DNA of 64,000 bases. Source: Dendrobates tinctorius (taxonomy: Eukaryota). Shown in pieces: positions 31,720-61,300 of this stretch. The stretch is from positions 6,820,001 through 6,884,000 of the forward strand of contig NW_027361924.1 in the NCBI RefSeq assembly GCF_039654945.1, given 5' to 3'. The notes under the pieces were generated by a model. It was not told the DNA's origin and ran no database searches. It saw only the letters and a list, made by a program, of their open reading frames with translations. Both the position numbers and the translations under genes were made by a program. The number at the start of each line of letters is the position of its first letter. Within the stretch, counting starts at the first letter, position 1.

Positions 31720-31964
31720 CCAGCCAATTAGAACGCTAAGACTTCATTACAGGGCGTGGTTTGGGTATCTTAACACAACACTGCGCCACTGTTCCAATCA
31801 GCGAGCGGACTGGTAATGATTCTAACCAATGAAACATCGTCTGCCCCTACAGTGAGCCAATCAGGAGGCGCTGTTTGATGTCCTCCATCCAATGGCATGA
31901 GAGGGGCTGGGTTTGTACTGATACCTCTTCTGTGAGGTGTCGTCTGCTCGCAGAGAGGCGCAGG
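31720..31964 (+). promoter_or_regulatory. ROGDI promoter with phased CCAAT boxes
   Basis: CCAAT at 31724, 31794, 31826, 31857, 31889; GC-box GGGCGTGG ~31752; CpG-rich. Confidence 0.75.
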
Positions 31965-32012
31965 ATGGCGACGGCGGCAGCAGCGGCGAGCGGCGCGGAG
32001 CGAGGCGTGCTG
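31965..32012 (+). CDS. ROGDI: ROGDI exon 1 ([16 protein letters not shown])
   Basis: ATG 31965, CTG|GTGAGT. Confidence 0.92.
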
Positions 32013-35000
32013 GTGAGTGGCCGTGACTGTTCTCACACCCGTGCTTAGTGTGGTGTAGGGCTGCGGAGGGATCGGGACGTTTTTCGGCGCAGTGGTCAGT
32101 GACCGGTCCTCTGGTGGGGTCATGTGACCACATTTGGGGTAGACCCGCCGCCCCCATCCCCCTCAGCCTCACAGGTGGCGGAACGTCCACAAAAAGGTCG
32201 GAGAATCCAGATTATTGGAATTGTGTACAAATGCCTGTAATCTGGAATATTCCCAGGAGCAAGATGCCAGAAGGTGCTACTGTAAAACTACAACTCCCAG
32301 CATGCCCTCCCGTTTTGCCAGACCGTGAGATTCCGGATTAATGGGGCTGGTGGAAAGCTCTGAGCCCGTAGTAGGGCTGTTGTAATCCGGAGGTTTTACG
32401 GTTACCGTGTCACACTCGTATGATGATGAGGGCAGTAGTGTTTGTAGTCCGGTCATCGGAGGGGGACGAGCGGCCGCTCTGGGGGTAATCCGGGCTCTGA
32501 GCCCACTGCTAATCACTCAGGTGGCTGATAACAGAGAGCAATGGATCACATCGCTGACTGCAGACTACCACCCCCAACATGCTGTCTGTGTACACAACAC
32601 ACCGTCCTGTGCAGACCGGACCCAGCCAGGCTCTGAGCCGCCTGCCCCGGGAGACGACTGACACCCAAAACACAGAAGAGTGCAGCACGGGAGAAGCCTT
32701 GTAGGAGAGGGACGGAAGAAAGGTGCAGCACGGGAGAAGCCTCGTAGGAGAGGGACGGAAGAAAGGTGCAGCACGGGAGAAGCCTCGCAGGAGAGGGACG
32801 GAAGAAAGGTGCAGCACGGGAGAAGCCTCGCAGGAGAGGGACGGAGGAAAGGTGCAGCACGGGAGAAGCCTCGCAGGAGAGGGACGGAGGAAAGGTGCAG
32901 CACGGGAGTAGCCTCGCAGGAGAGGGACGGAGGAAAGGTGCAGCACGGGAGAAGCCTCGCAGGAGAGGGACGGAGGAAAGGTGCAGCACGGGAGAAGCCT
33001 CGCAGGAGAGGGACGGAGGAAAGGTGCAGCACGGGAGAAGCCTCGCAGGAGAGGGACGGAGGAAAGGTGCAGCACGGGAGAAGCCTCGCAGGAGAGGGAC
33101 GGAGGAAAGGTGCAGCACGGGAGAAGCCTCGCAGGAGAGGGACGGAGGAAAGGGGCAGCACGGGAGAAGCCTCGCAGGAGAGGGACGGAGGAAAGGGGCA
33201 GCACGGGAGAAGCCTCGCAGGAGAGGGACGGAGGAAAGGGGCAGCACGGGAGAAGCCTCGCAGGAGAGGGACGGAGGAAAGGGGCAGCACGGGAGAAGCC
33301 TCGCAGGAGAGGGACGGAGGAAAGGGGCAGCACGGGAGAAGCCTCGCAGGAGAGGGACGGAGGAAAGGGGCAGCACGGGAGAAGCCTCGCAGGAGAGGGA
33401 CGGAGGAAAGGGGCAGCACGGGAGAAGCCTCGCAGGAGAGGGACGGAGGAAAGGGGCAGCACGGGAGAAGCCTCGCAGGAGAGGGACGGAGGAAAGGGGC
33501 AGCACGGGAGAAGCCTCGCAGGAGAGGGACGGAGGAAAGGGGCAGCACGGGAGAAGCCTCGCAGGAGAGGGACGGAGGAAAGGGGCAGCACGGGAGAAGC
33601 CTCGCAGGAGAGGGACGGAGGAAAGGTGCAGCACGGGAGACGCCTCGCAGGAGAGGGACGGAGGTAAGGTGCAGCACGGGAGACGCCTCGCAGGAGAGGG
33701 ACGGAGGAAAGGTGCAGCACGGGAGACGCTTCGCAGGAGAGGGGCGGAGGAAAGGGGCAGCACGGGAGAAGCCTCGTAGGAGAGGGGCGGAGGAAAGGGG
33801 CAGCACGGGAGAAGCCTCGCAGGAGAGGGACGGAGGAGAGGTGCAGCACGGGAGAAGCCTTGCAGGAGAGACGCTGCAGCGTGGACCGTTCCTTTGAGCA
33901 GTCAGGTGATGTAATGGGTGGCATCGCGGAGATGTCGGTGTAATCGTGACCCCGCACACAATGGGCGCAGAGGAGCCAAGATTCCGTCAGTATTGAGTTA
34001 CGGCATCAGAGCAGGAAGAAGGGAAACCAATCTCCAGCGGGCGGCCTGAGCTGCTCACTGCCTCCTGCATCTGCCCCCTGTGAATTCTACTTATTGGGGG
34101 GCACACACTTTGGGCAATGTAGTCCTAGGATCTCGAGCTTCGGTTTACGATGGCGGCATTCAGATCCTAGGGGAGACGCCGCTGCACTGAGACACGTCTG
34201 ATCTGTGGCGCCCCCCCCCCCCCCCCCGGTGCACTAGGAAACGTCTGATCTGTGGCGCCCCCCGCTGGTTTCTTTGTCCTCTATTTGCAGGAGGAAGAGT
34301 TCAAATGGCTCCTGAAGGAAGAGGTGCACTCCGTCCTCAAGCAGCTGCAGGACATCCTGAAGGTCAGCGCACGGACACCACACGTCACATGACGCATCAG
34401 AAAAGATGGCCGCCTGGACCAGTGTAGTGGGAGCAGTACTTAAAGGGGGTCTCCTGCAACCCCAGTGAGGGAGGGGGGCGGATTCAGCTCTTACCATACA
34501 CCTTAGCGGGTTCTTCCTCCGGCTTCCCAATACTTGGGTTCATCTGTTCTCAGTGGGAAGAGCAACTGAAGCCCCACGCCAGACCCCCTGCGTCATCCCT
34601 CCTGCCCTCCGGACCCCTGCGTCATCCCTCCTGCCCTCCGGACCCCTGCGTCATCCCTCCGGGCCCCTGTGTGTGTGCCCTCTCACCCCCTGGGACCCCT
34701 GTGTCATCCCTCCCGCCCTCCGGACCCCTGTGTGTGCCCTCTAACGCTCTGGGCCCCTGTGGGTGCCCTCTCACCCCCTGGGGCCCCTGTGTCACCCCTC
34801 CTGCCCTCCGGGCCCCTGTGTGTGCCCTCTCACCCCCTGGGCCCCCTGTGTCATCCCTCCTGCCCCCTGTGTCATCCCTCCTGCCCTCCGGACCCCTGTG
34901 TCATCCCTCCTGCCCTCCGGACCCCTGTGTCATCCCTCCTGCCCTCCGGACCCCTGTGTCATCCCTCCTGCCCTCCGGACCCCTGTGTCATCCCTCCTGC

Positions 35001-38000
35001 CCTCCGGACCCCTGTGTCATCCCTCCTGCCCTCCGGACCCCTGTGTCATCCCTCCTGCCCTCCGGACCCCTGTGTCATCCCTCCTGCCCTCCGGACCCCT
35101 GTGTGTGCCCTCTCACCCCCTGGGACCCCTGTGTCATCCCTCCTGCCCTCCTTTTGGGCGACTGTGTCATCCCTTCTGCCGTCCAGACCCCTGTGTGTAC
35201 CCTCTCACCCTCCGGGCCCCTGTGTCATTCCTCCTGCCCTCCAGACCCGTGTGTGCCCTCTCACCCTCCGGGCCCCGTGTCATTCCTCCTGCCCTCCAGA
35301 CCCCTGTGTGTGCTCTCTCACCCTCCGGGCCCCTGTGTCATCCCTTCTGCCCTCCAGACCCCTATGTGTGCCCTCTCATCCTCCGGGCCCCTGTGTCATC
35401 CCTCCTGCCCTCCGGACCCCTGTGTCATCCCTCCTGGCCTCCAGACCCCTGTGTGTGCTCTCTCACCCTCCGGGCCCCGTGTCATTCCTCCTGCCCTCCA
35501 GACCCCTGTGTGTGCTCTCTCACCCTCCGGGCCCCTGTGTCATCCCTTCTGCCCTCCAGACCCCTATGTGTGCCCTCTCACCCTCCGGGCCCCTGTGTCA
35601 TCCCTCCTGCCCTCCGGACCCCTGTGTCATCCCTCCTGCCCTCCGGACCCCTGTGTCATCCCTCCTGCCCTCCGGACCCCTGTGTCATCCCTCCTGCCCT
35701 CCGGACCCCTGTGTCATCCCTCCTGCCCTCCGGACCCCTGTGTCATCCCTCCTGCCCTCCGGACCCCTGTGTCATCCCTCCGGACCCCTGTGTCATCCCT
35801 CCTGCCCTCCGGACCCCTGTGTCATCCCTCCTGCCCTCCGGACCCCTGTGTCATCCCTACTGCCCTCCGGACCCCTGTGTGTGCCCTCTCACCCCCTGGG
35901 ACCCCTGTGTCATCCCTCCTGCCCTCCTTTTGGGCGCCTGTGTCATCCCTTCTGCCGTCCAGACCCCTGTGTGTACCCTCTCACCCTCCGGGCCCCTGTG
36001 TCATTCCTCCTGCCCTCCAGACCCCTGTGTGTGCCCTCTCACCCTCCGGGCCCCGTGTCATTCCTCCTGCCCTCCAGACCCCTGTGTGTGCTCTCTCACC
36101 CTCCGGGCCCTGTGTCATCCCTTCTGCCCTCCAGACCCCTATGTGTGCCCTCTCACCCTCCGGGCCCCTGTGTCATCCCTTCTGCCCTCCAGACCCCTAT
36201 GTGTGCCCTCTCACCCTCCGGGCCCCTGTGTCATCCCTTCTGTCCTCCAGATCCCTATGTGTGCCCTCTCACCCTCCGGGCCCCTGTGTCATCCCTTCTG
36301 CCGTCCAGACCCCTGTGTGTGCCCTCACCCTCCGGGCCCCTGTGTCATCCCTTCTGCCCTCCAGACCCCTGTGTGTGCCCTCTCACCCTCCGGGCCCCTG
36401 TGTCATCCCTCCTGCCCTCCAGACCCCTGTGTGTGCCCTCTCACCCTCCGGGCCCCTGGTCATTCCTCCTGCCCTCCAGACCCCTGTGTGTGCTCTCTCA
36501 CCCTCCCGGCCCCTGTGTCATCCCTTCTGCCGTCCAGACCCCTGTGTGTGCCCTCTCACCCTCCGGGCCCCTGTGTCATCCCTTCTGCCCTCCAGACCCC
36601 TGTGTGTGCCCTCTCACCCTCTGTGCCCCTGTGTCATTCCTCCTGCCCTCCAGACCCCCGTGTGTGCCCTCTCACCCTCCGGGCCCCTGTGTCATTCCTC
36701 CTGCCCTCCAGACCCCCGTGTGTGCCCTCTCACCCTCCGGGCCCCTGTGTCATTCCTCCTGCCCTCCAGACCCCTGTGTGTGCCCTCTCACCCTCCGGGC
36801 CCCTGTGTCATCCCTCCTGCCCTCCGGGCCCCTGTGTGTGCCCTCTCACCCCCTGGGACACCTGTGTCATCCCTCTTGCCCTCCGGGCCCCTGTGTCATC
36901 CCTCTTGCCCTCCGGGCCCCTGTGTCATCCCTCTTGCCCTCCGGGCCCCTGTGTCATCCCTCTTGCCCTCCGGGCCCCTGTGTCATCCCTCTTGCCCTCC
37001 GGGCCCCTGTGTCATCCCTCTTGCCCTCCGGGCCCCTGTGTCATCCCTCTTGCCCTCCGGGCCCCTGTGTCATCCCTCTTGCCCTCCGGGCCCCTGTGTC
37101 ATCCCTCTTGCCCTCCGGGCCCCTGTGTCATCCCTCTTGCCCTCCGGGCCCCTGTGTCATCCCTCCGGGCCCCTATGCCCTCTCTTTAGGCCTCTGTGCC
37201 CGCCCTGACATCTGCAGGATTAATGTCTTCTGATATTTTTTTTGTGTCCCGCTTCGTTCCTCTAGGATGCCTCCCGGAGGTTCACCCTCCCCATCGGAGC
37301 AGCAGACGGCACCTCCAAGCAGGAGAACTTTGTACTGGGCAGCTCCAGGTGAGGGCCGGGGGGCTACACGGATGCCGGGGGTCGCAGGCGGCTCTGACTC
37401 TGCCCGTTTTTGCTTTCCAGCACAGACCAGGTGAAGGGCGTCCTGACCCTACAAGGAGACACGCTGTGTCAGGCTGTGAGTATGTTCCCGTTCACTGACA
37501 GCCAGCAGGGTGTTTGTTGCCCGCAGGTTTGGGCTCGGGGGGGGCAGATTTGGGCTCGGGGGGCTGATCCGCACGGTGTCTTGGCTTTGCAGGAAGTGAA
37601 CCTGAAGGTGGCGAGGACCAATCAGACGCTGCACTTCGCTTTCCGGGACGACAAGCAGTGGAAGATGCAGCAGGTGGGCGCACGGCGTCCGGTGTCCCCG
37701 GGGGTCGTAATATTTCAGCTGGATCTGTCAGCAGCAGTTTTCTGTGCTGCAGATGCTGCGGCGCCTCTTTTCTCGCAGGGACATGTAGATATTAATGTTC
37801 TTGGCTCCTCAGATTCAGGATGCCAGGAACCACGTGAATCAGGCGATTTATCTGCTCACAAACCGGGGCGAGAACTACACCTTCCAGACCGGGTCGGAGG
37901 TGCTGAAGGTGAGCGCGGGGTGTCCCCCATAACTGGGGGCTCAGATCAGGGGAGCACCCAGGATGTGACCCGCCCGTCATCTCTTCTCCGCAGCTGATGG

Positions 38001-40396
38001 ACGCCGTGATGCTGCAGCTGACCAGAGCCCGCAATCGCCTCACCACGCCGGCGACCATGACCCTGCCAGAGGTGGCCACCAGCGGCCTGACGGTAACATG
38101 TCCGTGTATCTGCAGCACGGCTGGTGGGAACTACAGGCCCCAGCATGCCCGGATGGGTGCAGATAGTCATGGTATGCTGGGACTTGTAGTACTGGATTAG
38201 CTGGAAATGTTGCAGACTGCCGGCATAGACTGAGGAGGGAGCTGCACAGATGTAACAGAGCTGAGTTGGTCATTGGCACCACGTTGCAGTGTTATGTCCT
38301 AGTTCCGGGCCAGCTCTGCTCCGCCGATCTCGTGCGGCTCTCCGTCACTCCAACTCTTCTCTACTTTTAGAAAATGTTCACCCCGTCGCTTCCTGCAGAC
38401 GTCCTACTCAACTTCTATGTGAACGTGAACAAGCTCTGCCTCCTGGTCTACCAGCTGCACGGCCTGCAGCCCAACTCCACCAAGGTGAGACACTGACACG
38501 AAGCTGCAGCCCTGCAGCCTGATTCACCAAGGTGAAACACTGACACGAAGCTGCAGCTCTGCAGCCCGACTCCACCAAGGTGAGACACTGACACGGAGCC
38601 TCAGCTCTGCAGCCCGACTCCACCAAGGTGAGACACTGACATGGAGCTACTGCTCTGAGACCTGACTCCACCAAGGTGAGACACTGACACGGAGCTACTG
38701 CTCTGCAGCCCAACTCCACCAAGGTGAGACACTGACACAGATCTGCAGCTCTGCTGTCCAACTCCACCAAGGTGGGACACTGACATGAATCTGCAGCCCA
38801 ACTCCTCCAAGGTGAGACACTGGCACGAAGCCTCAGCTCTGCAGCCCAACTCCACCAAGGTGAGACACTGACACAAAGCCGCAGCTCTGCAGCCCGACTC
38901 CACCAAGGTGAGACACTGACACGGAGCCTCAGCTCTGCAGCCCGACTCCACCAAGGTGAGACACTGACATGGAGCTACTGCTCTGAGACCTGACTCCACC
39001 AAGGTGAGACACTGACACGGAGCTACTGCTCTGCAGCCCAACTCCACCAAGGTGAGACACTGACACAGATCTGCAGCTCTGCTGTCCAACTCCACCAAGG
39101 TGGGACACTGACACGAATCTGCAGCCCGACTCCTCCAAGGTGAGACACTGGCACGGAGCCTCAGCTCTGCAGCCCAACTCCACCAAGGTGAGACACTGAC
39201 ACAAAGCCGCAGCTCTGCAGCCCAAGGTGAGACACTGACATGGAGCTGCAGCACTGCAGCCCGACTCCACCAAGGTGAGACACTGACACGAAGCTGCAGC
39301 TCTGCAGCCCGACTCCACCAAGGTGAGACACTGACACGAAGCTGCAGCTCTGCAGCCCGACTCCACCAAGGTGAGACACTGACACGAAGCTGCAGCTCTG
39401 CAGCCCGACTCCACCAAGGTGAGACACTGACACGAAGCTGCAGCTCTGCAGCCCGACTCCACCAAGGTGAGACACTGGCACGGAGCCGCAGCTCTGCGGG
39501 GCTCCTGATAAATCTTAACAGGGTATTGCCGGAAGAAGTTATCAAATATCTACACAGTAAGTGCTAACATCTAGATCTTTAGGGGTCTGATGGCTGAGAC
39601 CCTCACCAGCAGCACAGCCACTGCGGCTCCGGCCTCCTCTCACCGTTGTTTCCTTCCTTCCTTTCTAGAATTTCCGTCCTGCCGGCAGCTCCGTCCTGCA
39701 CAATCCCGGCGCCATGTTGTGAGTATGAAGGGGGCACATACTTCTCAGTGGGGTCTCATCTCAGCATGGACATTACTGTGTTACTAGTATATGATCGCTG
39801 GGGGTCCGGCCTTTGGGACCCCACTAATCCTGAGATGAAGCGTGGGCGGCAGAGGGCGAGCGCTGCTGTGCCGGTAAAACATGGAACCGCACCATGGCTC
39901 CGTCCCTCTCAGTGACCAGCGAGGTCCCAGAGGTCGGACCCCCAGGGGTCGATAAGTGATGGTGTCCAGCAGTATCACATCGTGGACTGAGATGGGAACG
40001 CCCCTTTAAAGAAAACTTCAGGCCAAACTGATCCTCCATGTCCTGTAGGGTGGGAGCCAGCGGAGTGCCTGCTCAGAGTTTTCCCAGCAGCTTTGGCTGT
40101 GACTGGAGGATAATTTCTGCCTACAGCTGTGTTTTCTGCCTCCTCACAGTGAGCTGAACACCCAGCGCTTCGAGGTCAGCCACGTCCATAAGGTGGAGTG
40201 CGTGGTGCCGTGGCTGAACGACGCCCTGGTCTTCTTCACCGTCTCGCTGCAGCTCTGCCAGCAACTCAAGGACAAGGTGCGTGTCCCCCATCTGTCGCCA
40301 CAGCCATCCCGGCCTCCGGGGGCGCTGCTGACCGGTGCTGTGTTTCCTTCACAGATCTCTGTCTTCTCCAGCTACTGGAACTTCCGACCGTATTAA
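31965..40396 (+). CDS. ROGDI: Protein rogdi homolog, 11 coding exons, 867 nt, 288 aa
   Basis: join(31965-32012,34291-34362,37266-37348,37421-37475,37593-37673,37813-37908,37994-38092,38371-38484,39669-39718,40150-40276,40355-40396). All GT-AG with consistent phases; [23 protein letters not shown] and [12 protein letters not shown] motifs; syntenic with GLYR1. Confidence 0.97.
32678..33870. repeat. 43-bp purine-rich minisatellite in ROGDI intron 1
   Basis: GGTGCAGCACGGGAGAAGCCTCGCAGGAGAGGGACGGAGGAAA, about 27 units. Confidence 0.97.
34291..34362 (+). CDS. ROGDI: ROGDI exon 2 ([24 protein letters not shown])
   Basis: tgcAG and AAG|GTCAGC. Confidence 0.96.
34580..37177. repeat. 29-30 bp C-rich minisatellite with two alternating variants in ROGDI intron 2
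   Basis: CCGGACCCCTGTGTCATCCCTCCTGCCCT and CCCCTGTGTGTGCCCTCTCACCCTCCGGG units. Confidence 0.96.
37266..37348 (+). CDS. ROGDI: ROGDI exon 3 (DASRRFTLP...QENFVLGSS)
   Basis: tctAG and AG|GTGAGG. Confidence 0.94.
37421..37475 (+). CDS. ROGDI: ROGDI exon 4 ([18 protein letters not shown])
   Basis: tccAG and GCT|GTGAGT. Confidence 0.95.
37593..37673 (+). CDS. ROGDI: ROGDI exon 5 ([27 protein letters not shown])
   Basis: tgcAG and CAG|GTGGGC. Confidence 0.95.
37813..37908 (+). CDS. ROGDI: ROGDI exon 6 ([15 protein letters not shown]...SEVLK)
   Basis: ctcAG and AAG|GTGAGC. Confidence 0.95.
37994..38092 (+). CDS. ROGDI: ROGDI exon 7 ([33 protein letters not shown])
   Basis: cgcAG and ACG|GTAACA. 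Confidence 0.96.
38371..38484 (+). CDS. ROGDI: ROGDI exon 8 ([38 protein letters not shown])
   Basis: tttAG and AAG|GTGAGA. Confidence 0.95.
38464..39497 (+). repeat. 48-bp tandem amplification of the ROGDI exon 8/intron 8 junction
   Basis: Unit CTGCAGCCCRACTCCACCAAG|GTGAGACACTGACACGAAGCTGCAGCT; the first copy is the real exon end; about 21 extra copies. Confidence 0.96.
39669..39718 (+). CDS. ROGDI: ROGDI exon 9 ([17 protein letters not shown])
   Basis: tctAG and TT|GTGAGT. Confidence 0.95.
40150..40276 (+). CDS. ROGDI: ROGDI exon 10 ([42 protein letters not shown])
   Basis: cacAG and AAG|GTGCGT. Confidence 0.96.
40355..40396 (+). CDS. ROGDI: ROGDI exon 11, coding part ([13 protein letters not shown])
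   Basis: cacAG acceptor, TAA stop. Confidence 0.96.
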
Positions 40397-45156: not shown

Positions 45157-48100
45157 AGTGTACAAGAATATAGCTACTATAATACTGCCCCCTATGTACA
45201 AGAATATAACTACTATAATACTGCCCCCTATATACAAGAATATAACTACTATAATACTGCCCCCTATGTATAAGAATATAACTACTATAATACTGCCACT
45301 ATGTACAAGAATATAACTACTATAATACTGCCCCTATGTACAAGAATATAACTACTATAATACTGCCCCCTATGTACAAGAATATAACTACTATAATACT
45401 GTCCCCTATGGACAAGAATATAACTACTATAATACTGCCCCCTATGTACAAGAATATAACTACTATAATACTGTCCCCTATGGACAAGAATATAACTACT
45501 ATAATACTGCCCCCTATGTACAAGAATATAACTACTATAATACTGCCCCCAATATACAAGAATATAGCTACTATAATACTGCCCCCTATGTACAAGAATA
45601 TAACTACTAGAATACTGCCCCCTATGTACAAGAATATAACTACTATAATACTGCCCCCTATGTACAAGAATATAACTACTATAATACTGCCCATATGTAC
45701 AAGAATATAACTACTATAATACTGCCCCCTATGTACAAGAATATAACTACTATAATACTGCCCCTATGTACAAGAATATAACTACTATAATACTGCCCCT
45801 ATGTACAAGAATATAACTACCATATTACTGCCCTCTATGTACAAGAATATAACTACTATAATACTGCCCCCTATGTACAAGAATATAACTACTATAATAC
45901 TGCCCCTATGTACAAGAATATAACTACTATAATACTGCCCCTATGTACAAGAATATAACTACTATAATACTGCCCCCTATGTACAAGAATATAACTACTA
46001 TAATACTGCCCCTATGTACAAGAATATAACTACTATAATACTGCCCCTATGTACAAGAATATAACTACTATAATACTGCTCCTATATACAAGAATATAAC
46101 TACTATAATACTGCCCCCTATGGACAAGAATATAACTACTATAATACTGCCCCCTATGTACAAGAATATAACTACTATAATACTGCCCCCTATGTACAAG
46201 AATATAGCTACTATAATACTGCCCCCCTATGTACAAGAATATAACTACTATAATACTGCCCCTATGTACAAGAATATAACTACTATATTACTGCTCCTAT
46301 GTACAAGAATATAACTACTAGAATAATGCCCCCTATGTACAAGAATATAACTACTATAATACTGCCCCTATGTACAAGAATATAACTACTATAATACTGC
46401 TCCTATATACAAGAATATAACTACTATAATACTGCCCCCTATGTACAAGAATATAACTACTATAATACTGCCCCCTATGTACAAGAATATAACTACTATA
46501 ATACTTCCCCCCATATACAAGAATATAACTACTAGAATACTGCCCCTATGTACAAGAATATAACTACTAGAATACTGCCCCTATGTACAAGAATATAACT
46601 ACTATAATACTGCCCCCTATGTACAAGAATATAACTACTATAATACTGCCCCCTATGTACAAGAATATAACTACTATAATACTGCTCCTATATACAAGAA
46701 TATAACTGCTATAATACTGCCCCCTATGTACAAGAATATAACTACTATAATACTGCCACTATGTACAAGAATATAACTACTATAATACTGCCCCCTATGT
46801 ACAAGAATATAACTACTAGAATACTGCCCCTATGTACAAGAATATAACTACTAGAATACTGCCTCCTATGTACAAGAATATAACTACTATAATACTGCCC
46901 CCTATGTACAGGAATATAACTATTATAATACTACCCCTATGTATAAGAATATAACTACTATAATACTGCCTCCTATGTACAAGAATATAACTATAATACT
47001 GCCCCCTATGTACAAGAATATAACTACTATAATACTGCCCCCTATGTACAGGAATATAACTACTATAATACTACCCCTATGTACAAGAATATAACTATAA
47101 TACTGCCTCCTATGTACAAGAATATAACTACTATAATACTGCCCCCTATGTACAGGAATATAACTACTATAATACTACCCCTATGTACAAGAATATAACT
47201 ACTATAATACTGCCTCCTATGTACAAGAATATAACTATAATACTGCCCCCTATGTACAAGAATATAACTACTATAATACTGCTCCTATGTACAAGAATAT
47301 AACTACTATAATACTGCCTCCTATGTACAAGAATATAACTACTATAATACTGCCCCCTATGTACAGGAATATAACTACTATAATACTACCCCTATGTATA
47401 AGAATATAACTACTATAATACTGCCCCCTATGTACAAGAATATAGTAGAATACTGCCCCTATGTACAAGAATATAACTACTAGAATACTGCCCCCTATGT
47501 ACAAGAATATAACTACTAGAATACTGCCCCTATGTACAAGAATATAACTACTATAATACTGCCTCCTATGTACAAGAATATAACTACTATAATACTGCCC
47601 CCTATGTACAGGAATATAACTACTATAATACTACCCCTATGTATAAGAATATAACTACTATAATACTGCCCCTATGTACAAGAATATAACTACTATAATA
47701 CTGCCCCCTATGAACAAGAATATAACTACTGTAATACTGCTCCTATGTACAAGAATATAACTGCTATAATACTGCCCCCTATGTACAAGAATATAACTAC
47801 TGTAATACTGCCCCTATGTACAAGAATATAACTACTATAATACTGCCCCCTATGTACAAGAATATAACTACTATAATACTGCCTCCTATGTACAAGAATA
47901 TAACTACTATAATACTGCCCCCTATGTACAAGAATATAACTACTATAATACTGCCCCTATGTACAAGAATATAACTACTATAATACTGCCCCTATGTACA
48001 AGAATATAACTACTATAATACTGCCCCTATGTACAAGAATATAACTACTATAATACTGCCCCCTATGTACAAGAATATAACTACTATAATACTGCCTCCT

Positions 48101-51100
48101 ATGTACAAGAATATAACTACTATAATACTGCTCCCTATGTACAGGAATATAACTACTATAATACTGCCCCCTATGTACAGGAATATACTATAATACTGCC
48201 CCCTATGTACAAGAATATAACTACTATAATACTGCCTCCTATGTACAAGAATATAACTACTATAATACTGCCCCCTATGTACAAGAATATAACTACTATA
48301 ATACTGCCCCTATGTACAAGAATATAACTACTATAATACTGCCCCCTATGTACAAGAATATAACTACTGTAATACTGCTCCTATGTACAAGAATATAACT
48401 GCTATAATACTGCCCCCTATGTACAAGAATATAACTACTGTAATACTGCCCCTATGTACAAGAATATAACTACTGTAATACTGCCCCTATGTACAAGAAT
48501 ATAACTACTATAATACTGCCCCCTATGTACAAGAATATAACTACTATAATACTGCCTCCTATGTACAAGAATATAACTACTATAATACTGCCCCCTATGT
48601 ACAAGAATATAACTACTATAATACTGCCCCTATGTACAAGATTATAACTACTATAATACTGCCCCTATGTACAAGAATATAACTACTATAATACTGCCCC
48701 TATGTACAAGAATATAACTACTATAATACTGCCCCTATGTACAAGAATATAACAACTATAATACTGCCCCCTATGTACAAGAATATAACTACTATAATAC
48801 TGCCTCCTATGTACAAGAATATAACTACTATAATACTGCTCCCTATGTACAGGAATATAACTACTATAATACTGCCCCCTATGTACAGGAATATAACTAC
48901 TATAATACTGCCCCCTATGTACAAGAATATAACTACTATAATACTGCCTCCTATGTACAAGAATATAACTACTATAATACTGCCCCCTATGTACAAGAAT
49001 ATAACTACTATAATACTGCCTCCTATGTACAAGAATATAACTACTATAATACTGCTCCCTATGTACAGGAATATAACTACTATAATACTGCCCCCTATGT
49101 ACAGGAATATAACTACTATAATACTGCCCCCTATGTACAAGAATATAACTACTGTAATACTGCCTCCTATGTACAAGAATATAACTACTGTAATACTGCC
49201 CCCTATGTACAAGAATATAACTACTGTAATACTGCCCCTGTGTACAAGAATATAACTACTATAATACTGCCCCCTATGTACAAGAATATAACTACTATAA
49301 TACTGCCTCCTATGTACAAGAATATAACTACTATAATACTGCCCCCTATGTACAAGAATATAACTACTATAATACTGCCCCTATGTACAAGAATATAACT
49401 ACTATAATACTGCCCCTATGTACAAGAATATAACTACTATAATACTGCCCCTATGTACAAGAATATAACTACTATAATACTGCCCCTATGTACAAGAATA
49501 TAACTACTATAATACTGCCCCCTATGTACAAGAATATAACTACTATAATACTGCCTCCTATGTACAAGAATATAACTACTATAATACTGCCCCTATGTAC
49601 AAGAATATAACTACTATAATACTGCCCCTATGTACAAGAATATAACTACTATAATACTGCCCCCTATGTACAAGAATATAACTACTATAATACTGTCCCC
49701 TATGGACAAGAATATAACTACTATAATACTGCCCCCTATGTACAAGAATATAACTACTATAATACTGTCCCCTATGGACAAGAATATAACTACTATAATA
49801 CTGCCCCCTATGTACAAGAATATAACTACTATAATACTGCCCCCAATATACAAGAATATAGCTACTATAATACTGCCCCCTATGTACAAGAATATAACTA
49901 CTAGAATACTGCCCCCTATGTACAAGAATATAACTACTATAATACTGCCCCCTATGTACAAGAATATAACTACTATAATACTGCCCATATGTACAAGAAT
50001 ATAACTACTATAATACTGCCCCCTATGTACAAGAATATAACTACTATAATACTGCCCCTATGTACAAGAATATAACTACTATAATACTGCCCCTATGTAC
50101 AAGAATATAACTACCATATTACTGCCCTCTATGTACAAGAATATAACTACTATAATACTGCCCCCTATGTACAAGAATATAACTACTATAATACTGCCCC
50201 TATGTACAAGAATATAACTACTATAATACTGCCCCTATGTACAAGAATATAACTACTATAATACTGCCCCCTATGTACAAGAATATAACTACTATAATAC
50301 TGCCCCTATGTACAAGAATATAACTACTATAATACTGCCCCTATGTACAAGAATATAACTACTATAATACTGCTCCTATATACAAGAATATAACTACTAT
50401 AATACTGCCCCCTATGGACAAGAATATAACTACTATAATACTGCCCCCTATGTACAAGAATATAACTACTATAATACTGCCCCCTATGTACAAGAATATA
50501 GCTACTATAATACTGCCCCCCTATGTACAAGAATATAACTACTATAATACTGCCCCTATGTACAAGAATATAACTACTATATTACTGCTCCTATGTACAA
50601 GAATATAACTACTAGAATAATGCCCCCTATGTACAAGAATATAACTACTATAATACTGCCCCTATGTACAAGAATATAACTACTATAATACTGCTCCTAT
50701 ATACAAGAATATAACTACTATAATACTGCCCCCTATGTACAAGAATATAACTACTATAATACTGCCCCCTATGTACAAGAATATAACTACTATAATACTT
50801 CCCCCCATATACAAGAATATAACTACTAGAATACTGCCCCTATGTACAAGAATATAACTACTAGAATACTGCCCCTATGTACAAGAATATAACTACTATA
50901 ATACTGCCCCCTATGTACAAGAATATAACTACTATAATACTGCCTCCTATGTACAAGAATATAACTACTATAATACTGCCCCCTATGTACAAGAATATAA
51001 CTACTATAATACTGCCCCTATGTACAAGAATATAACTACTATAATACTGCCCCTATGTACAAGAATATAACTACTATAATACTGCCCCTATGTACAAGAA

Positions 51101-53857
51101 TATAACTACTATAATACTGCCCCCTATGTACAAGAATATAACTACTATAATACTGCCTCCTATGTACAAGAATATAACTACTATAATACTGCTCCCTATG
51201 TACAGGAATATAACTACTATAATACTGCCCCCTATGTACAGGAATATAACTACTATAATACTGCCCCCTATGTACAAGAATATAACTACTATAATACTGC
51301 CTCCTATGTACAAGAATATAACTACTATAATACTGCCCCCTATGTACAAGAATATAACTACTATAATACTGCCCCTATGTACAAGAATATAACTACTATA
51401 ATACTGCCCCCTATGTACAAGAATATAACTACTGTAATACTGCTCCTATGTACAAGAATATAACTGCTATAATACTGCCCCCTATGTACAAGAATATAAC
51501 TACTGTAATACTGCCCCTATGTACAAGAATATAACTACTATAATACTGCCCCCTATGTACAAGAATATAACTACTATAATACTGCCTCCTATGTACAAGA
51601 ATATAACTACTATAATACTGCCCCCTATGTACAAGAATATAACTACTATAATACTGCCCCTATGTACAAGATTATAACTACTATAATACTGCCCCTATGT
51701 ACAAGAATATAACTACTATAATACTGCCCCTATGTACAAGAATATAACTACTATAATACTGCCCCTATGTACAAGAATATAACAACTATAATACTGCCCC
51801 CTATGTACAAGAATATAACTACTATAATACTGCCTCCTATGTACAAGAATATAACTACTATAATACTGCTCCCTATGTACAGGAATATAACTACTATAAT
51901 ACTGCCCCCTATGTACAGGAATATAACTACTATAATACTGCCCCCTATGTACAAGAATATAACTACTATAATACTGCCTCCTATGTACAAGAATATAACT
52001 ACTATAATACTGCCCCCTATGTACAAGAATATAACTACTATAATACTGCCTCCTATGTACAAGAATATAACTACTATAATACTGCTCCCTATGTACAGGA
52101 ATATAACTACTATAATACTGCCCCCTATGTACAGGAATATAACTACTATAATACTGCCCCCTATGTACAAGAATATAACTACTGTAATACTGCCTCCTAT
52201 GTACAAGAATATAACTACTGTAATACTGCCCCCTATGTACAAGAATATAACTACTGTAATACTGCCCCTGTGTACAAGAATATAACTACTATAATACTGC
52301 CCCCTATGTACAAGAATATAACTACTATAATACTGCCTCCTATGTACAAGAATATAACTACTATAATACTGCCCCCTATGTACAAGAATATAACTACTAT
52401 AATACTGCCCCTATGTACAAGAATATAACTACTATAATACTGCCCCTATGTACAAGAATATAACTACTATAATACTGCCCCTATGTACAAGAATATAACT
52501 ACTATAATACTGCCCCTATGTACAAGAATATAACTACTATATTACTGCCCCCTATGTACAAGAATATAACTACTATAATACTGCCTCCTATGTACAAGAA
52601 TATAACTACTATAATACTGCCCCTATGTACAAGAATATAACTACTATAATACTGCCCCTATGTACAAGAATATAACTACTATAATACTGCCCCCTATGTA
52701 CAAGAATATAACTACTATAATACTGCCCCTATGTACAAGAATATAACTACTATAATACTGCCCCTATGTACAAGAATATAACTACTATAATACTGCCCCT
52801 ATGTACAAGAATATAACTACTATAATACTGCCTCCTATGTACAAGAATATAACTACTATAATACTGCCCCCTATGTACAGGAATATAACTACTATAATAC
52901 TACCCCTATGTATAAGAATATAACTACTATAATACTGCCCCCTATGTACAAGAATATACTAAAATACTGCCCCTATGTACAAGAATATAACTACTAGAAT
53001 ACTGCCCCCTATGTACAAGAATATAACTACTAGAATACTGCCCCTATGTACAAGAATATAACTACTATAATACTGCCTCCTATGTACAAGAATATAACTA
53101 CTATAATACTGCCCCCTATGTACAGGAATATAACTACTATAATACTACCCCTATGTATAAGAATATAACTACTATAATACTGCCCCTATGTACAAGAATA
53201 TAACTACTATAATACTGCCCCCTATGTACAAGAATATAACTACTGTAATACTGCTCCTATGTACAAGAATATAACTGCTATAATACTGCCCCCTATGTAC
53301 AAGAATATAACTACTGTAATACTGCCCCTATGTACAAGAATATAACTACTATAATACTGCGCCCTATGTACAAGAATAGAACTACTATAATACTGCCTCC
53401 TATGTACAAGAATATAACTACTATAATACTGCCCCCTATGTACAAGAATATAACTACTATAATACTGCCCCTATGTACAAGAATATAACTACTATAATAC
53501 TGCCCCTATGTACAAGAATATAACTACTATAATACTGCCCCTATGTACAAGAATATAACTACTATAATACTGCCCCTATGTACAAGAATATAACTACTAT
53601 AATACTGCCCCCTATGTACAAGAATATAACTACTATAATACTGCCTCCTATGTACAAGAATATAACTACTATAATACTGTCCCCTATGTACAGGAATATA
53701 ACTACTATAATACTGCCCCCTATGTACAAGAATATAACTACTATAATACTGCCCCTATATACAAGAATATAACTACTATAATACTGCCCCCTATGTAGAG
53801 GAATATATCTACTATAATACTGCTCCTATGTACAAAAATATAACTACTATAATACTA
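45157..53857. repeat. 8.7-kb satellite, 35-36 bp unit ATGTACAAGAATATAACTACTATAATACTGCCCCCT, in the last SMIM22 intron
   Basis: Roughly 245 units with kb-scale internal duplications. Confidence 0.98.
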
Positions 53858-55398: not shown

Positions 55399-58300
55399 CT
55401 GAGGCGCTCAGTGTTTCCTCCATCACCTCCCTCACTTGCTCACACTCAGTCTCTATGTTACCCCCTGAGGTGCTCAGTGTTTCCTCCATCACCTCCCTCA
55501 CTTGCTCACACTCAGTCTCTATGTTACCCCCTGAGGCTCTCAGTGTTTCCTCCATCACCTCCCTCACTTGCTCACACTCAGTCTCTATGTTACCCCCTGA
55601 GGCTCTCAGTGTTTCCTCCATCACCTCCCTCACTTGCTCACACTCAGTCTCTATGTTACCCCCTGAGGTGCTCAGTGTTTCCTCCATCACCTCCCTCACT
55701 TGCTCACACTCAGTCTCTATGTTACCCCCTGAGGCTCTCAGTGTTTCCTCCATCACCACCCTCACTTGCTCACACTCAGTCCCTATGTTACCTCCTGAGG
55801 TGCTCAGTGTTTCCTCCATCACCACCCTCACTTGCTCACACTCAGTCTCTTTGTTATCCCCTGAGGCGCTCAGTGTTTCCTCCATCACCACCCTCACTTC
55901 CTCACACTCAGTCCCTATGTTACCCCCTGAGGCGCTCAGTGTTTCCTCCATCACCACCCTCACTTGCTCACACTCAGTCTCTATGTTACCCCCTGAGGCG
56001 CTCAGTGTTTCCTCCATCACCACCCTCACTTGCTCACACTCAGTCTCTATGTTATCCCCTGAGGCGCTCAGTGTTTCCTCCATCACCACCCTCACTTGCT
56101 CACACTCAGTCCCTGTTACCCCCTGAGGCGCTCAGTGTTTCCTCCATCACCACCCTCACTTGCTCACACTCAGTCTCTATGTTACCCCCTGAGGCGCTCA
56201 GTGTTTCCTCCATCACCTCCCTCACTTGCTCACACTCAGTCTCTATGTTATCCCCTGAGGCGCTCAGTGTTTCCTCCATCATCACCCTCACTTGCTCACA
56301 CTCAGTCCCTGTTACCCCCTGAGGCGCTCAGTGTTTCCTCCATCACCACCCTCACTTGCTCACACTCAGTCTCTATGTTACCCCCTGAGGCGCTCAGTGT
56401 TTCCTCCATCACCACCCTCACTTGCTCACACTCAGTCTCTATGTTATCCCCTGAGGCGCTCAGTGTTTCCTCCATCACCACCCTCACTTGCTCACACTCA
56501 GTCTCTATGTTACCCCCTGAGGCGCTCAGTGTTTCCTCCATCACCACCCTCACTTGCTCACACTCAGTCCCTATGTTACCCCCTGAGGTGCTCAGTGTTT
56601 CCTCCATCACCACCCTCACTTGCTCACACTCAGTCTCTATGTTACCCCCTGAGGCGCTCAATGTTTCCTCCATCACCACCCTCACTAGCTCACACTCAGT
56701 CCCTATGATACCCCCTGAGGTGCTCAGTGTTTCCTCCATCACCACCCTCACTTGCTCACACTCAGTCTCTATGTTACCCCCTGAGGTGCTCAGTGTTTCC
56801 TCCATCACCACCCTCACTTGCTCACACTCAGTCCCTATGTTATCCCCTGAGGCGCTCAGTGTTTCCTCCATCACCACCCTCACTTGCTCACACTCAGTCC
56901 CTATGTTATCCCCTGAGGCGCTCAGTGTTTCCTCCATCACCTCCCTCACTTGCTCACACTCAGTCCCTATGTTATCCCCTGAGGCGCTCAGTGTTTCCTC
57001 CATCACCACCCTCACTTGCTCACACTCAGTCTCTATGTTACCCCCTGAGGTGCTCAGTGTTTCCTCCATCACCACCCTCACTTGCTCACACTCAGTCCCT
57101 ATGTTATCCCCTGAAGCGCTCAATGTTTCCTCCATCATACCCTCACTTGCTCACACTCAGTCCCTATGTTACCCCCTGAGGCACTCAGTGTTTCCTCCAT
57201 CACCTCCCTCACTTGCTCACACTCAGTCTCTATGTTACCCCCTGAGGCGCTCAGTGTTTCCTCCATCACCACCCTCACTTGCTCACACTCAGTCTCTATG
57301 TTATCCCCTGAGGCGCTCAGTATTTCCTCCATCACCACCCTCACTTGCTCACACTCAGTCCCTATGTTACCCCCTGAGGCACTCAGTGTTTCCTCCATCA
57401 CCACCCTCACTTGCTCACACTCAGTCTCTATGTTACCCCCTGAGGCGCTCAGTGTTTCCTCCATCACCACCCTCACTTGCTCACACTCAGTCTCTATGTT
57501 ATCCCCTGAGGCTCTCAGTGTTTCCTCCATCACCACCCTCACTTGCTCACACTCAGTCCCTATGTTACCCCCTGAGGCGCTCAGTGTTTCCTCCATCACC
57601 ACCCTCACTTGCTCACACTCAGTCTCTATGTTACCCCCTGAGGCGCTCAGTGTTTCCTCCATCACCACCCTCACTTGCTCACACTCAGTCTCTATGTTAC
57701 CCCCTGAGGCGCTCAGTGTTTCCTCCATCACCACCCTCACTTGCTCACACTCAGTCCCTATGTTACCCCCTGAGGTGCTCAGTGTTTCCTCCATCACCAC
57801 CCTCACTTGCTCACACTCAGTCTCTATGTTACCCCCTGAGGCGCTCAGTGTTTCCTCCATCACCACACTCACTTGCTCACACTCAGTCTCTATGTTACCC
57901 CCTGAGGCGCTCAGTGTTTCCTCCATCACCACCCTCACTTGCTCACACTCAGTCTCTATGTTACCCCCTGAGGCGCTCAATGTTTCCTCCATCACCACCC
58001 TCACTTGCTCACACTCAGTCTCTATGTTACCCACTGAGGCGCTCAATGTTTCCTCCATCACCTCCCTCACTTGCTCACACTCAGTCCCTGTTACCCCCTG
58101 AGGTGCTCAGTGTTTCCTCCATCACCACCCTCACTTGCTCACACTCAGTCTCTATGTTACCCCCTGAGGCGCTCAGTGTTTCCTCCATCACCACCCTCAC
58201 TTGCTCACACTCAGTCCCTATGTTACCCCCTGAGGTGCTCAGTGTTTCCTCCATCACCACCCTCACTTGCTCACACTCAGTCTCTATGTTACCCCCTGAG

Positions 58301-61300
58301 GCGCTCAATGTTTCCTCCATCACCACCCTCACTTGCTCACACTCAGTCCCTATGTTACCCCCTGAGGTGCTCAGTGTTTCCTCCATCACCACCCTCACTT
58401 GCTCACACTCAGTCTCTATGTTACCCCCTGAGGTGCTCAGTGTTTCCTCCATCACCACCCTCACTTGCTCACACTCAGTCCCTATGTTATCCCCTGAGGC
58501 GCTCAGTGTTTCCTCCATCACCTCCCTCACTTGCTCACACTCAGTCCCTATGTTATCCCCTGAGGCGCTCAGTGTTTCCTCCATCACCACCCTCACTTGC
58601 TCACACTCAGTCTCTATGTTACCCCCTGAGGTGCTCAGTGTTTCCTCCATCACCACCCTCACTTGCTCACACTCAGTCCCTATGTTATCCCCTGAGGCGC
58701 TCAATGTTTCCTCCATCATACCCTCACTTGCTCACACTCAGTCCCTATGTTACCCCCTGAGGAACTCAGTGTTTCCTCCATCACCTCCCTCACTTGCTCA
58801 CACTCAGTCTCTATGTTACCCCCTGAGGCGCTCAGTGTTTCCTCCATCACCACCCTCACTTGCTCACACTCAGTCTCTATGTTATCCCCTGAGGCGCTCA
58901 GTATTTCCTCCATCACCACCCTCACTTGCTCAAACTCAGTCCCTATGTTACCCCCTGAGGCACTCAGTGTTTCCTCCATCACCACCCTCACTTGCTCACA
59001 CTCAGTCTCTATGTTACCCCCTGAGGCGCTCAGTGTTTCCTCCATCACCACCCTCACTTGCTCACACTCAGTCTCTATGTTATCCCCTGAGGCTCTCAGT
59101 GTTTCCTCCATCACCACCCTCACTTGCTCACACTCAGTCCCTATGTTACCCCCTGAGGCGCTCAGTGTTTCCTCCATCACCACCCTCACTTGCTCACACT
59201 CAGTCTCTATGTTACCCCCTGAGGCGCTCAGTGTTTCCTCCATCACCACCTTCACTTGCTCACACTCAGTCTCTATGTTACCCCCTGAGGCGCTCAGTGT
59301 TTCCTCCATCACCACCCTCACTTGCTCACACTCAGTCCCTATGTTACCCCCTGAGGTGCTCAGTGTTTCCTCCATCACCACCCTCACTTGCTCACACTCA
59401 GTCTCTATGTTACCCCCTGAGGCGCTCAGTGTTTCCTCCATCACCACACTCACTTGCTCACACTCAGTCTCTATGTTACCCCCTGAGGCGCTCAGTGTTT
59501 CCTCCATCACCACCCTCACTTGCTCACACTCAGTCTCTATGTTACCCCCTGAGGCGCTCAATGTTTCCTCCATCACCACCCTCACTTGCTCACACTCAGT
59601 CTCTATGTTACCCTCTGAGGCGCTCAATGTTTCCTCCATCACCTCCCTCACTTGCTCACACTCAGTCCCTGTTACCCCCTGAGGTGCTCAGTGTTTCCTC
59701 CATCACCACCCTCACTTGCTCACACTCAGTCTCTATGTTACCCCCTGAGGCGCTCAGTGTTTCCTCCATCACCACCCTCACTTGCTCACACTCAGTCCCT
59801 ATGTTACCCCCTGAGGTGCTCAGTGTTTCCTCCATCACCACCCTCACTTGCTCACACTCAGTCTCTATGTTACCCCCTGAGGCGCTCAATGTTTCCTCCA
59901 TCACCACCCTCACTTGCTCACACTCAGTCCCTATGTTACCCCCTGAGGTGCTCAGTGTTTCCTCCATCACCACCCTCACTTGCTCACACTCAGTCTCTAT
60001 GTTACCCCCTGAGGTGCTCAGTGTTTCCTCCATCACCACCCTCACTTGCTCACACTCAGTCCCTATGTTATCCCCTGAGGCGCTCAGTGTTTCCTCCATC
60101 ACCACCCTCACTTGCTCACACTCAGTCCCTATGTTATCCCCTGAGGCGCTCAGTGTTTCCTCCATCACCTCCCTCACTTGCTCACACTCAGTCCCTATGT
60201 TATCCCCTGAGGCGCTCAGTGTTTCCTCCATCACCACCCTCACTTGCTCACACTCAGTCTCTATGTTACCCCCTGAGGTGCTCAGTGTTTCCTCCATCAC
60301 CACCCTCACTTGCTCACACTCAGTCCCTATGTTATCCCCTGAGGCGCTCAATGTTTCCTCCATCATACCCTCACTTGCTCACACTCAGTCCCTATGTTAC
60401 CCCCTGAGGCACTCAGTGTTTCCTCCATCACCTCCCTCACTTGCTCACACTCAGTCTCTATGTTACCCCCTGAGGCGCTCAGTGTTTCCTCCATCACCAC
60501 CCTCACTTGCTCACACTCAGTCTCTATGTTATCCCCTGAGGCGCTCAGTATTTCCTCCATCACCACCCTCACTTGCTCACACTCAGTCCCTATGTTACCC
60601 CCTGAGGCACTCAGTGTTTCCTCCATCACCACCCTCACTTGCTCACACTCAGTCTCTATGTTACCCCCTGAGGCGCTCAGTGTTTCCTCCATCACCACCC
60701 TCACTTGCTCACACTCAGTCTCTATGTTATCCCCTGAGGCTCTCAGTGTTTCCTCCATCACCACCCTCACTTGCTCACACTCAGTCCCTATGTTACCCCC
60801 TGAGGCGCTCAGTGTTTCCTCCATCACCACCCTCACTTGCTCACACTCAGTCTCTATGTTACCCCCTGAGGCGCTCAGTGTTTCCTCCATCACCACCCTC
60901 ACTTGCTCACACTCAGTCTCTATGTTACCCCCTGAGGCGCTCAGTGTTTCCTCCATCACCACCCTCACTTGCTCACACTCAGTCCCTATGTTACCCCCTG
61001 AGGTGCTCAGTGTTTCCTCCATCACCACCCTCACTTGCTCACACTCAGTCTCTATGTTACCCCCTGAGGCGCTCAGTGTTTCCTCCATCACCACACTCAC
61101 TTGCTCACACTCAGTCTCTATGTTACCCCCTGAGGCGCTCAGTGTTTCCTCCATCACCACCCTCACTTGCTCACACTCAGTCTCTATGTTACCCCCTGAG
61201 GCGCTCAATGTTTCCTCCATCACCACCCTCACTTGCTCACACTCAGTCTCTATGTTACCCCCTGAGGCGCTCAATGTTTCCTCCATCACCTCCCTCACTT

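Follow-up and report, generated by a model that had tools for sequence, protein, structure and literature searches.

A splice-donor minisatellite across the exon 8-intron 8 boundary of ROGDI in dendrobatoid frogs, probably a tolerated by-product

How is a 5' splice site chosen when the true donor is followed by 21 copies of itself ahead of a single acceptor? This question is raised by the ROGDI gene in a window of 64,000 nucleotides (nt) from Dendrobates tinctorius (assembly GCF_039654945.1, contig NW_027361924.1, positions 6,820,001 to 6,884,000 of the forward strand); "the window" refers to this whole stretch, and coordinates are counted from its first base. ROGDI is represented in the window by 11 coding exons from 31878 to 40396, and its intron 8 (38485-39668, 1184 nt) contains a tandem array that was called by Tandem Repeats Finder (TRF) at 38464-39497 on the plus strand, with a period of 48, 22.1 copies (copy number as assembled), 86% matches, and a score of 1406. 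An earlier note made from the letters of this DNA had described a 48-bp splice-donor array in ROGDI intron 8, and the TRF call together with the identity of exon 8 confirmed that it is real. The arrangement is head-to-tail and the unit falls within the range of about 10-100 bp, which makes the array a minisatellite. It accounts for 1013 nt (86%) of the intron and starts inside exon 8, 21 nt before the exon end at 38484; the first monomer therefore holds the exon-intron junction. This exon-boundary-spanning minisatellite is probably a tolerated by-product: we infer that the first donor does the work, that the copies are silent or nearly so, and that the array is not regulatory.

Exon 8 (KMFTPS...LQPNSTK; 38371..38484, plus strand, phase 0 at the 3' end) was identified by its match to residues 171-207 of the human ROGDI chain 5xqh_A in PDB (E 4.9e-14), and by its translation, which is exactly residues 208-245 of the D. 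tinctorius RefSeq protein P0209. The pyrimidine fraction of its acceptor is 0.82. The position of the exon 8 end is ancestral, being identical in Bufo, Leptodactylus, Rana, and human. The authentic 5' splice site AAG/GTGAGA (38482..38490, plus strand; the slash marks the exon end) is donor copy 1 of 22. Exon 9 (39669..39718, plus strand), which was placed by protein comparison, begins at 39669 with NFRPAG. The unique 3' part of intron 8 (39498..39668, plus strand) contains a candidate branch site, a 17-nt pyrimidine run, and the real acceptor, which has a pyrimidine fraction of 1.00. The predicted branch site is CTCTCAC, with its A at 39642, 26 nt before the AG. The orthologue of this unique part in both Ranitomeya species is the sequence that follows the array. 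A stop codon in the frame GTG AGA CAC TGA, which had been read immediately after exon 8, was also found: the open reading frame (ORF) 38374..38496 ends there as ...NSTKVRH-stop, and the in-frame TGA (38494..38496, plus strand) would be hit by any 3' extension of exon 8. This TGA precedes exons 9, 10, and 11, which puts the stop further ahead of the final exon junction than the 50-55 nt or so associated with nonsense-mediated decay (NMD). Every use of a downstream donor would thus lead to a premature stop upstream of three later exon junctions.

The array contains 22 AAG/GTG sites (19 AAGGTGAGA, 1 AAGGTGAAA, and 2 AAGGTGGGA), and the 9-mer of the true donor, AAGGTGAGA, recurs in 18 of the 21 downstream copies. 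The repetition of a consensus donor, as proposed in the earlier note, was thereby borne out. Its definition of the unit as 21 nt of exon 8 plus 27 nt of intron fits the sequence, but a division into 18 nt of exon and 30 nt of intron is equally good because CTG is shared at the breakpoint. The branch motif lies where it had been placed: a typical unit has CTGAC at positions 9-13 with a branch-like A at 12, a CAG that ends at 33, a competing CAG that ends 8 nt upstream at 25, and then a 15-nt exon-like segment. The donor-to-acceptor spacing inside one unit is 33 nt, which is predicted to forbid splicing within a single unit. The view that about 21 units are complete modules, or in-frame microexons, stood only in part. 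A YAG exactly 15 nt before the next donor was found in 15 units, whose segments read PDSTK, PNSTK, PNSSK, or PDSSK; one further unit has a 6-nt segment, and the segment of unit 1 is 14 nt long and out of frame. CTRAY, the 15-nt-spaced YAG, and the donor occur together in only 13 units.

The pseudo-acceptors were judged by their pyrimidine content (-20..-4) and by the presence of AG in -15..-4, and were compared with eight of ROGDI's own acceptors (the exon 7 acceptor was excluded). Their pyrimidine fraction is 0.41-0.53 and their pyrimidine runs are no longer than 2-4, whereas the eight real acceptors range from 0.59 to 1.00. An AG within -15..-4 is present in 11 of the 15 pseudo-acceptors and in none of the eight real ones. 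By these sequence measures the pseudo-acceptors are weak, in agreement with the weak pyrimidine tract and the competing CAG that had been remarked on before. Microexons measure 3-27 nt in multiples of 3 and need both a usable acceptor and a usable donor; the 15 segments have a fitting length and strong downstream donors, but weak acceptors.

Unit-by-unit comparison revealed a higher-order structure. Units 3-9 (38580..38907, plus strand, 328 nt) recur as units 10-16 (38908..39226, plus strand), in which unit 16 is cut to 39 nt. The pairs 3/10, 4/11, 5/12, and 6/13 are identical, pair 7/14 differs by 2 bases and pair 8/15 by 1, and units 9 and 16 are of unequal length. Units 18-21 (39275..39466, plus strand) are four identical copies (pairwise differences 0) that point to a recent expansion. 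The higher-order duplication and the identical units 18-21 are a signature of recent unequal exchange. Folding of the first 296 nt gave z = -2.2 and a small CACC/GGUG hairpin at every donor, including the true one; since all donors carry it alike, RNA structure does not mark the first donor.

For comparison with relatives, ROGDI proteins were collected by protein searches, and their genomic loci were then fetched and read. The same junction-spanning array was present in the assemblies of four other dendrobatoid frogs (L002-L005): Phyllobates terribilis has 14 donors (array 98% alike, intron of 685 nt, last donor 61 nt from exon 9), Ranitomeya imitator 27, R. variabilis 9, and Anomaloglossus baeobatrachus of the family Aromobatidae 47 (units of 41, 47, and 33 bp), so that the five species contain 9, 14, 22, 27, and 47 donors. 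The 3' edge of the array is identical in D. tinctorius, R. variabilis, and R. imitator, which argues for a single origin before the D. tinctorius and Ranitomeya lineages split. Intron 8 of two Bufo species and of Leptodactylus is only 110-146 nt long and has no array; it starts with a single copy of GTAAGACACTGA(C/G)ACG...GCTGCTCTG, which corresponds to the intronic 30 nt of the dendrobatid unit. This single-copy ancestral match indicates that the array unit is a copy of the ancestral exon 8/intron 8 junction. The junction array was not found in the ROGDI loci of Dendropsophus or Rana. The acceptor-like CTCTGCAG/CCC is best read as a product of the duplication joint, where the intronic GCTCTG meets the exonic Gln codon CAG.

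The consensus unit is distinct in each of Dendrobates, Phyllobates, Ranitomeya (one for both species), and Anomaloglossus, which indicates that the copies were homogenised within lineages. Across species only the donor stays the same, which follows from the way the unit is built. Of the 46 Anomaloglossus units, 40 lack the branch motif. Rhinoderma darwinii (Rhinodermatidae) also has an array at the exon 8 donor of ROGDI intron 8 (L009:15427-15915), with a 34-bp unit repeated 15 times. That unit consists of 24 nt of exon and 10 nt of intron, without the CACTGAC part, and the array is followed by Rhinoderma's own intron sequence; it is read as an independent birth at the same junction. The exon-derived CAG has been lost in 11 of its 14 complete units. 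With the branch motif or the AG lost in these relatives, the description "complete splice module" fits the units of some species and does not represent a conserved design. A second array was observed at the 3' end of intron 8 in R. imitator (L003:10896-11861; 30 bp x 32, 98% alike), in which the branch-like motif CTCTCAC is reiterated directly ahead of the pyrimidine tract of exon 9; the same 30-bp unit is present in two copies in R. variabilis and in one copy in D. tinctorius.

The coding end of exon 8 appears to take part in this turnover. Exon 8 of both Ranitomeya species ends in ...CCC AGC TCC ACC AAG (PSSTK; L003:9482-9502 and L005:9161-9181), and N (AAC) stands at the position of the Ranitomeya S in the remaining ROGDI proteins of the comparison, which range over other frogs and mammals, human included. 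AGC is also the commonest codon in the Ranitomeya arrays (20 of 26 units in R. imitator, 4 of 8 in R. variabilis), and it occurs in one P. terribilis unit. The match between the exon codon and the dominant array codon suggests that the exon 8 coding end joins in array homogenisation; in Ranitomeya, the array and the end of exon 8 thus seem to undergo concerted evolution.

Evidence on the outcome of splicing was sought in proteins and in sequencing runs. All five dendrobatoid RefSeq ROGDI proteins join K/NFRP canonically, that is, from the first donor. A PxSTK insert was absent from 287 ROGDI proteins, including the five dendrobatoid models; annotation pipelines often miss 15-nt exons, and absence from annotation is weak evidence. 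A search for ROGDI fragments of 60-192 amino acids (aa), either ending in ...NSTKVRH or carrying inserts, retrieved none from dendrobatids. Two RefSeq proteins of greater length, from D. tinctorius (317 aa) and P. terribilis (311 aa), were considered as insert forms and rejected because their extra length is an N-terminal extension, and the 316-aa entry of R. imitator was rejected because it retains intron 6. The D. tinctorius model starts 29 codons upstream of the conserved MATAAA (window 31878-31964), and that of P. terribilis has a comparable extension of 23 codons; these upstream starts may be an annotation choice and not the real N-terminus. Sequencing runs were scored by the share of sampled words that they held, with a listing threshold of 5%, and their RNA status was only guessed. 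Runs of organism A that were guessed to be RNA held 10-21% of the words of 37900-40100 (2.2 kb), for which spliced exons alone were estimated to give about 8%. For the array words (38497-39640) they fell below the 5% threshold, which is weak evidence.

The following history would account for these observations. In the common ancestor of dendrobatoids, a 48-bp segment consisting of the last 18-21 nt of exon 8 and the first 27-30 nt of a short intron would have been duplicated between breakpoints that share a short CTG(CAG) homology, and the duplicate would then have expanded by slippage or unequal exchange. Continuous turnover and homogenisation within species would keep the copies, donors included, alike without selection on each copy. 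The spliceosome would pair the first donor with the exon 9 acceptor; this donor lies 114 nt past a strong acceptor and would thereby complete a normal exon. The 21 later copies would be silent or nearly silent pseudo-sites, as in the experiments on intron 7 (IVS7) of human F7, and any transcript leaking to a later donor would include the TGA at 38494 and be expected to undergo NMD.

Several observations weigh against this history. By our own reading of the sequence, the donors pair 7 contiguous positions with U1; they are thus strong sites compared with those of F7 (consensus value 74), and perfect-consensus pseudo-sites did compete in F7 (PMC1557585). Runs guessed to be RNA from the related organisms B, C, and D held 6-9% of the array words. 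Variant types in the 48-nt units of the four Dendrobatidae are scarce in AAG plus GTGAGACACTGAC (4 of 37 in 16 of 48 positions, binomial p 0.0016). The persistence of the array in all five sampled dendrobatoid species from two families, and the independent array in Rhinoderma, could each hint at a benefit. Some of these points have other explanations. The array words in organisms B, C, and D could come from pre-mRNA no less readily than from extended exons, and pre-mRNA is favoured further because a 20-47-fold repeat is easy to assemble. The scarcity of variants could reflect constraint, but it is confounded by three CpG hot spots in the variable part and by the non-independence of the copies, and was given little weight.

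The strongest competitor to a tolerated array is a leaky one, in which a meaningful fraction of pre-mRNA would use the 21 downstream donors and be removed by NMD, so that ROGDI output would fall as copies rise; it would amount to the rheostat of the earlier note, whether adaptive or not. This has a modest chance of being correct. The 18 copies with the 9-mer of the true donor, the stop at 38494-38496 that all extensions would meet before three later exon junctions, and a copy number of 9-47 between species are all consistent with it, as are the use of the two nearest pseudo-sites in IFI6 and CBS and the competition by strong pseudo-sites in F7 minigenes (PMC1557585). On the other hand, downstream sites of equal strength were wholly unused in F7 (PMC1557585), no such isoform is found among the five RefSeq models or the 287 proteins, and a large drain should be costly with 47 donors in a conserved single-copy gene. 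A selected cis-element, either a U1 small nuclear ribonucleoprotein platform that aids exon 8 recognition or shields the transcript, or a spacer that prevents intron 8 from becoming too short, is quite unlikely. It would explain the occurrence of the array in all five dendrobatoid species sampled, its independent origin in Rhinoderma at the same junction, the fewer variant types in the donor and CACTGAC segment, and the conservation of the first 30 intron nt as a single copy in Bufo and Leptodactylus. However, Bufo, Leptodactylus, Dendropsophus, and Rana do without the array, the first two with introns of just 110-146 nt; copy number and unit length drift freely; and homogenisation alone accounts for the conserved donors in a genome where arrays are everywhere.

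Inclusion of one 15-nt segment (PDSTK, PNSTK, PNSSK, or PDSSK) between exons 8 and 9 in some tissue, with neighbouring segments mutually exclusive, is very improbable. In neuronal microexons the acceptor is typically weak and its AG directly preceded by UGC, and ROGDI matters in the brain. The units show a UGC-type sequence before the AG (CUCUGCAG), 15 of them offer an in-frame 15-nt segment followed by a strong donor, and the distance of about 59 nt from an upstream donor to the CTGAC of the next unit is sterically feasible. These features are offset by the low pyrimidine fractions (0.41-0.53) and the upstream AG in 11 of 15 units, by the loss of the branch motif in most Anomaloglossus units and of the AG in most Rhinoderma units, and by the lack of the insert in the 287 ROGDI proteins with the five dendrobatoid models, an argument that is weak for exons of 15 nt, which are often missed. 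A broader proposal is that the array is not inert: a measurable share of pre-mRNA would go to downstream donors, or 15-nt PxSTK microexons would be used in brain; its length (9-47 copies, probably varying within species) would tune ROGDI dosage or a loop; and its survival in two families and the birth of the Rhinoderma array would reflect use. This was given a small chance. Tandem repeats are error-prone in assemblies, and a collapsed or mis-expanded repeat could imitate such an array. This is scarcely credible here given the orthologous arrays in the independent assemblies of four other species, the non-identical units with higher-order structure, and the eight runs of organism A from two studies (X19-X22 and X29-X32), which hold 42-62% of the sampled words. 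Overall, the weak acceptors, the unconserved motifs, the canonical models, and the F7 precedent favour the neutral reading, which the earlier note had kept as its fallback; its functional proposals, an NMD rheostat and a bank of microexons, are unsupported here, yet not refuted.

The ROGDI array stands in a region rich in repeats. Tandem arrays of at least 13 kinds cover 31,184 of the 64,000 bases of the window (48.7%, as a sum of non-overlapping rows). ROGDI intron 1 contains an array of 43 bp x 27.7 (32680-33870) and intron 2 one of 29 bp x 89.6 (34585-37166); the three long introns of the gene (1, 2, and 8) are long only through arrays, and the other introns are about 70-430 nt. Also in the window are arrays of 36 bp x 245 (45159-53856) and of 66 bp x 130 (55399-64000), the latter running off the window end. 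A 26-bp x 52 array (16584-17930) consists of copies of a pyrimidine tract plus CAG and ends about 100 nt before the acceptor of a GLYR1 exon near 18037; on the acceptor side, it mirrors the ROGDI donor array. Two other candidates in the searches were discarded. A 314-aa ORF on the minus strand through the ROGDI array is not a gene and is expected from a stop-free 48-nt period. The top protein-search match to exon 8, P0001 (1530 aa, about 18 tandem repeats, E 6.7e-32), is a translated satellite with a chance likeness (FYIDIRSHCLLLYPVH) and not ROGDI.

Taken alone, the ROGDI array is ordinary, being a further minisatellite where such arrays fill half of the region. It is valuable as a natural experiment, in which five related species place 9, 14, 22, 27, and 47 near-identical strong donors before one acceptor. 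This set of species, together with the independent 34-bp version in another frog, could test the "most upstream donor wins" rule of F7 outside mammals and with strong sites. It also offers a case in which an array and the coding end of an exon evolve in concert.

The closest known system is IVS7 of human F7, in which a 37-bp variable number tandem repeat (VNTR) of 5-9 copies has its first monomer across the exon 7/IVS7 boundary (Borensztajn et al. 2006, PMC1557585). The authentic F7 donor is followed by 4-8 identical pseudo-sites, and only the most upstream site is used, although each pseudo-site is functional once the preceding sites are destroyed (PMC1557585). Raising the consensus value of pseudo-sites to 91 did not make them compete; only those with a perfect consensus did (PMC1557585). 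The ROGDI array resembles F7 as a junction-born minisatellite whose copy number varies, in the frogs between species, with an authentic donor followed by identical pseudo-donors, most of which would give a premature stop when used. It differs in its 48-bp unit with 18-21 nt of exon (4 nt in F7), in its 22 donors compared with 5-9, and in its AAG/GTGAGA, which is nearer to the consensus than the F7 site TGG/GTGGGT with its consensus value of 74. The frog units also carry acceptor-like and branch-like motifs, and the frog array is common to five species in two families; it is known from sequence, whereas site usage in F7 is known from experiment.

The same architecture is found in four other human genes. 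Intron 2 of IFI6 (6-16) has 25 pseudo-sites, of which the two nearest are also used constitutively, and the two nearest are likewise used among the 15-20 repeats of CBS IVS13 (PMC1557585); the copy numbers of these two arrays are similar to that of ROGDI. In LMNB2 (100 bp x 10-15) and in intron 4 of PDGF/PDGFA (81 bp x 16-18), the authentic site alone is used (PMC1557585). NMD-coupled unproductive splicing through poison exons or alternative donors is comparable in that the premature stop reached from any downstream donor would lie more than 50 nt ahead of the final junction, but in the frogs no alternative isoform was observed, and no sign was found of regulation or of conservation exceeding that from repeat homogenisation. 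The intronic VNTR of ABCA7 (PMC5954066) and the genome-wide spl-TRs (PMC10078293) are repeats that modulate splicing and were found through the association of repeat length with splicing. They share with ROGDI a variable-length tandem repeat in an intron near a splice site, and the ROGDI repeat is known as a sequence. By its architecture, as read from the assembled loci, the ROGDI array belongs to the known class of exon-boundary-spanning minisatellites (F7, IFI6, CBS, LMNB2, and PDGFA), within which it differs from F7 by the greater strength of its donors, its larger number of copies, its additional acceptor-like motifs, and its retention in two frog families.

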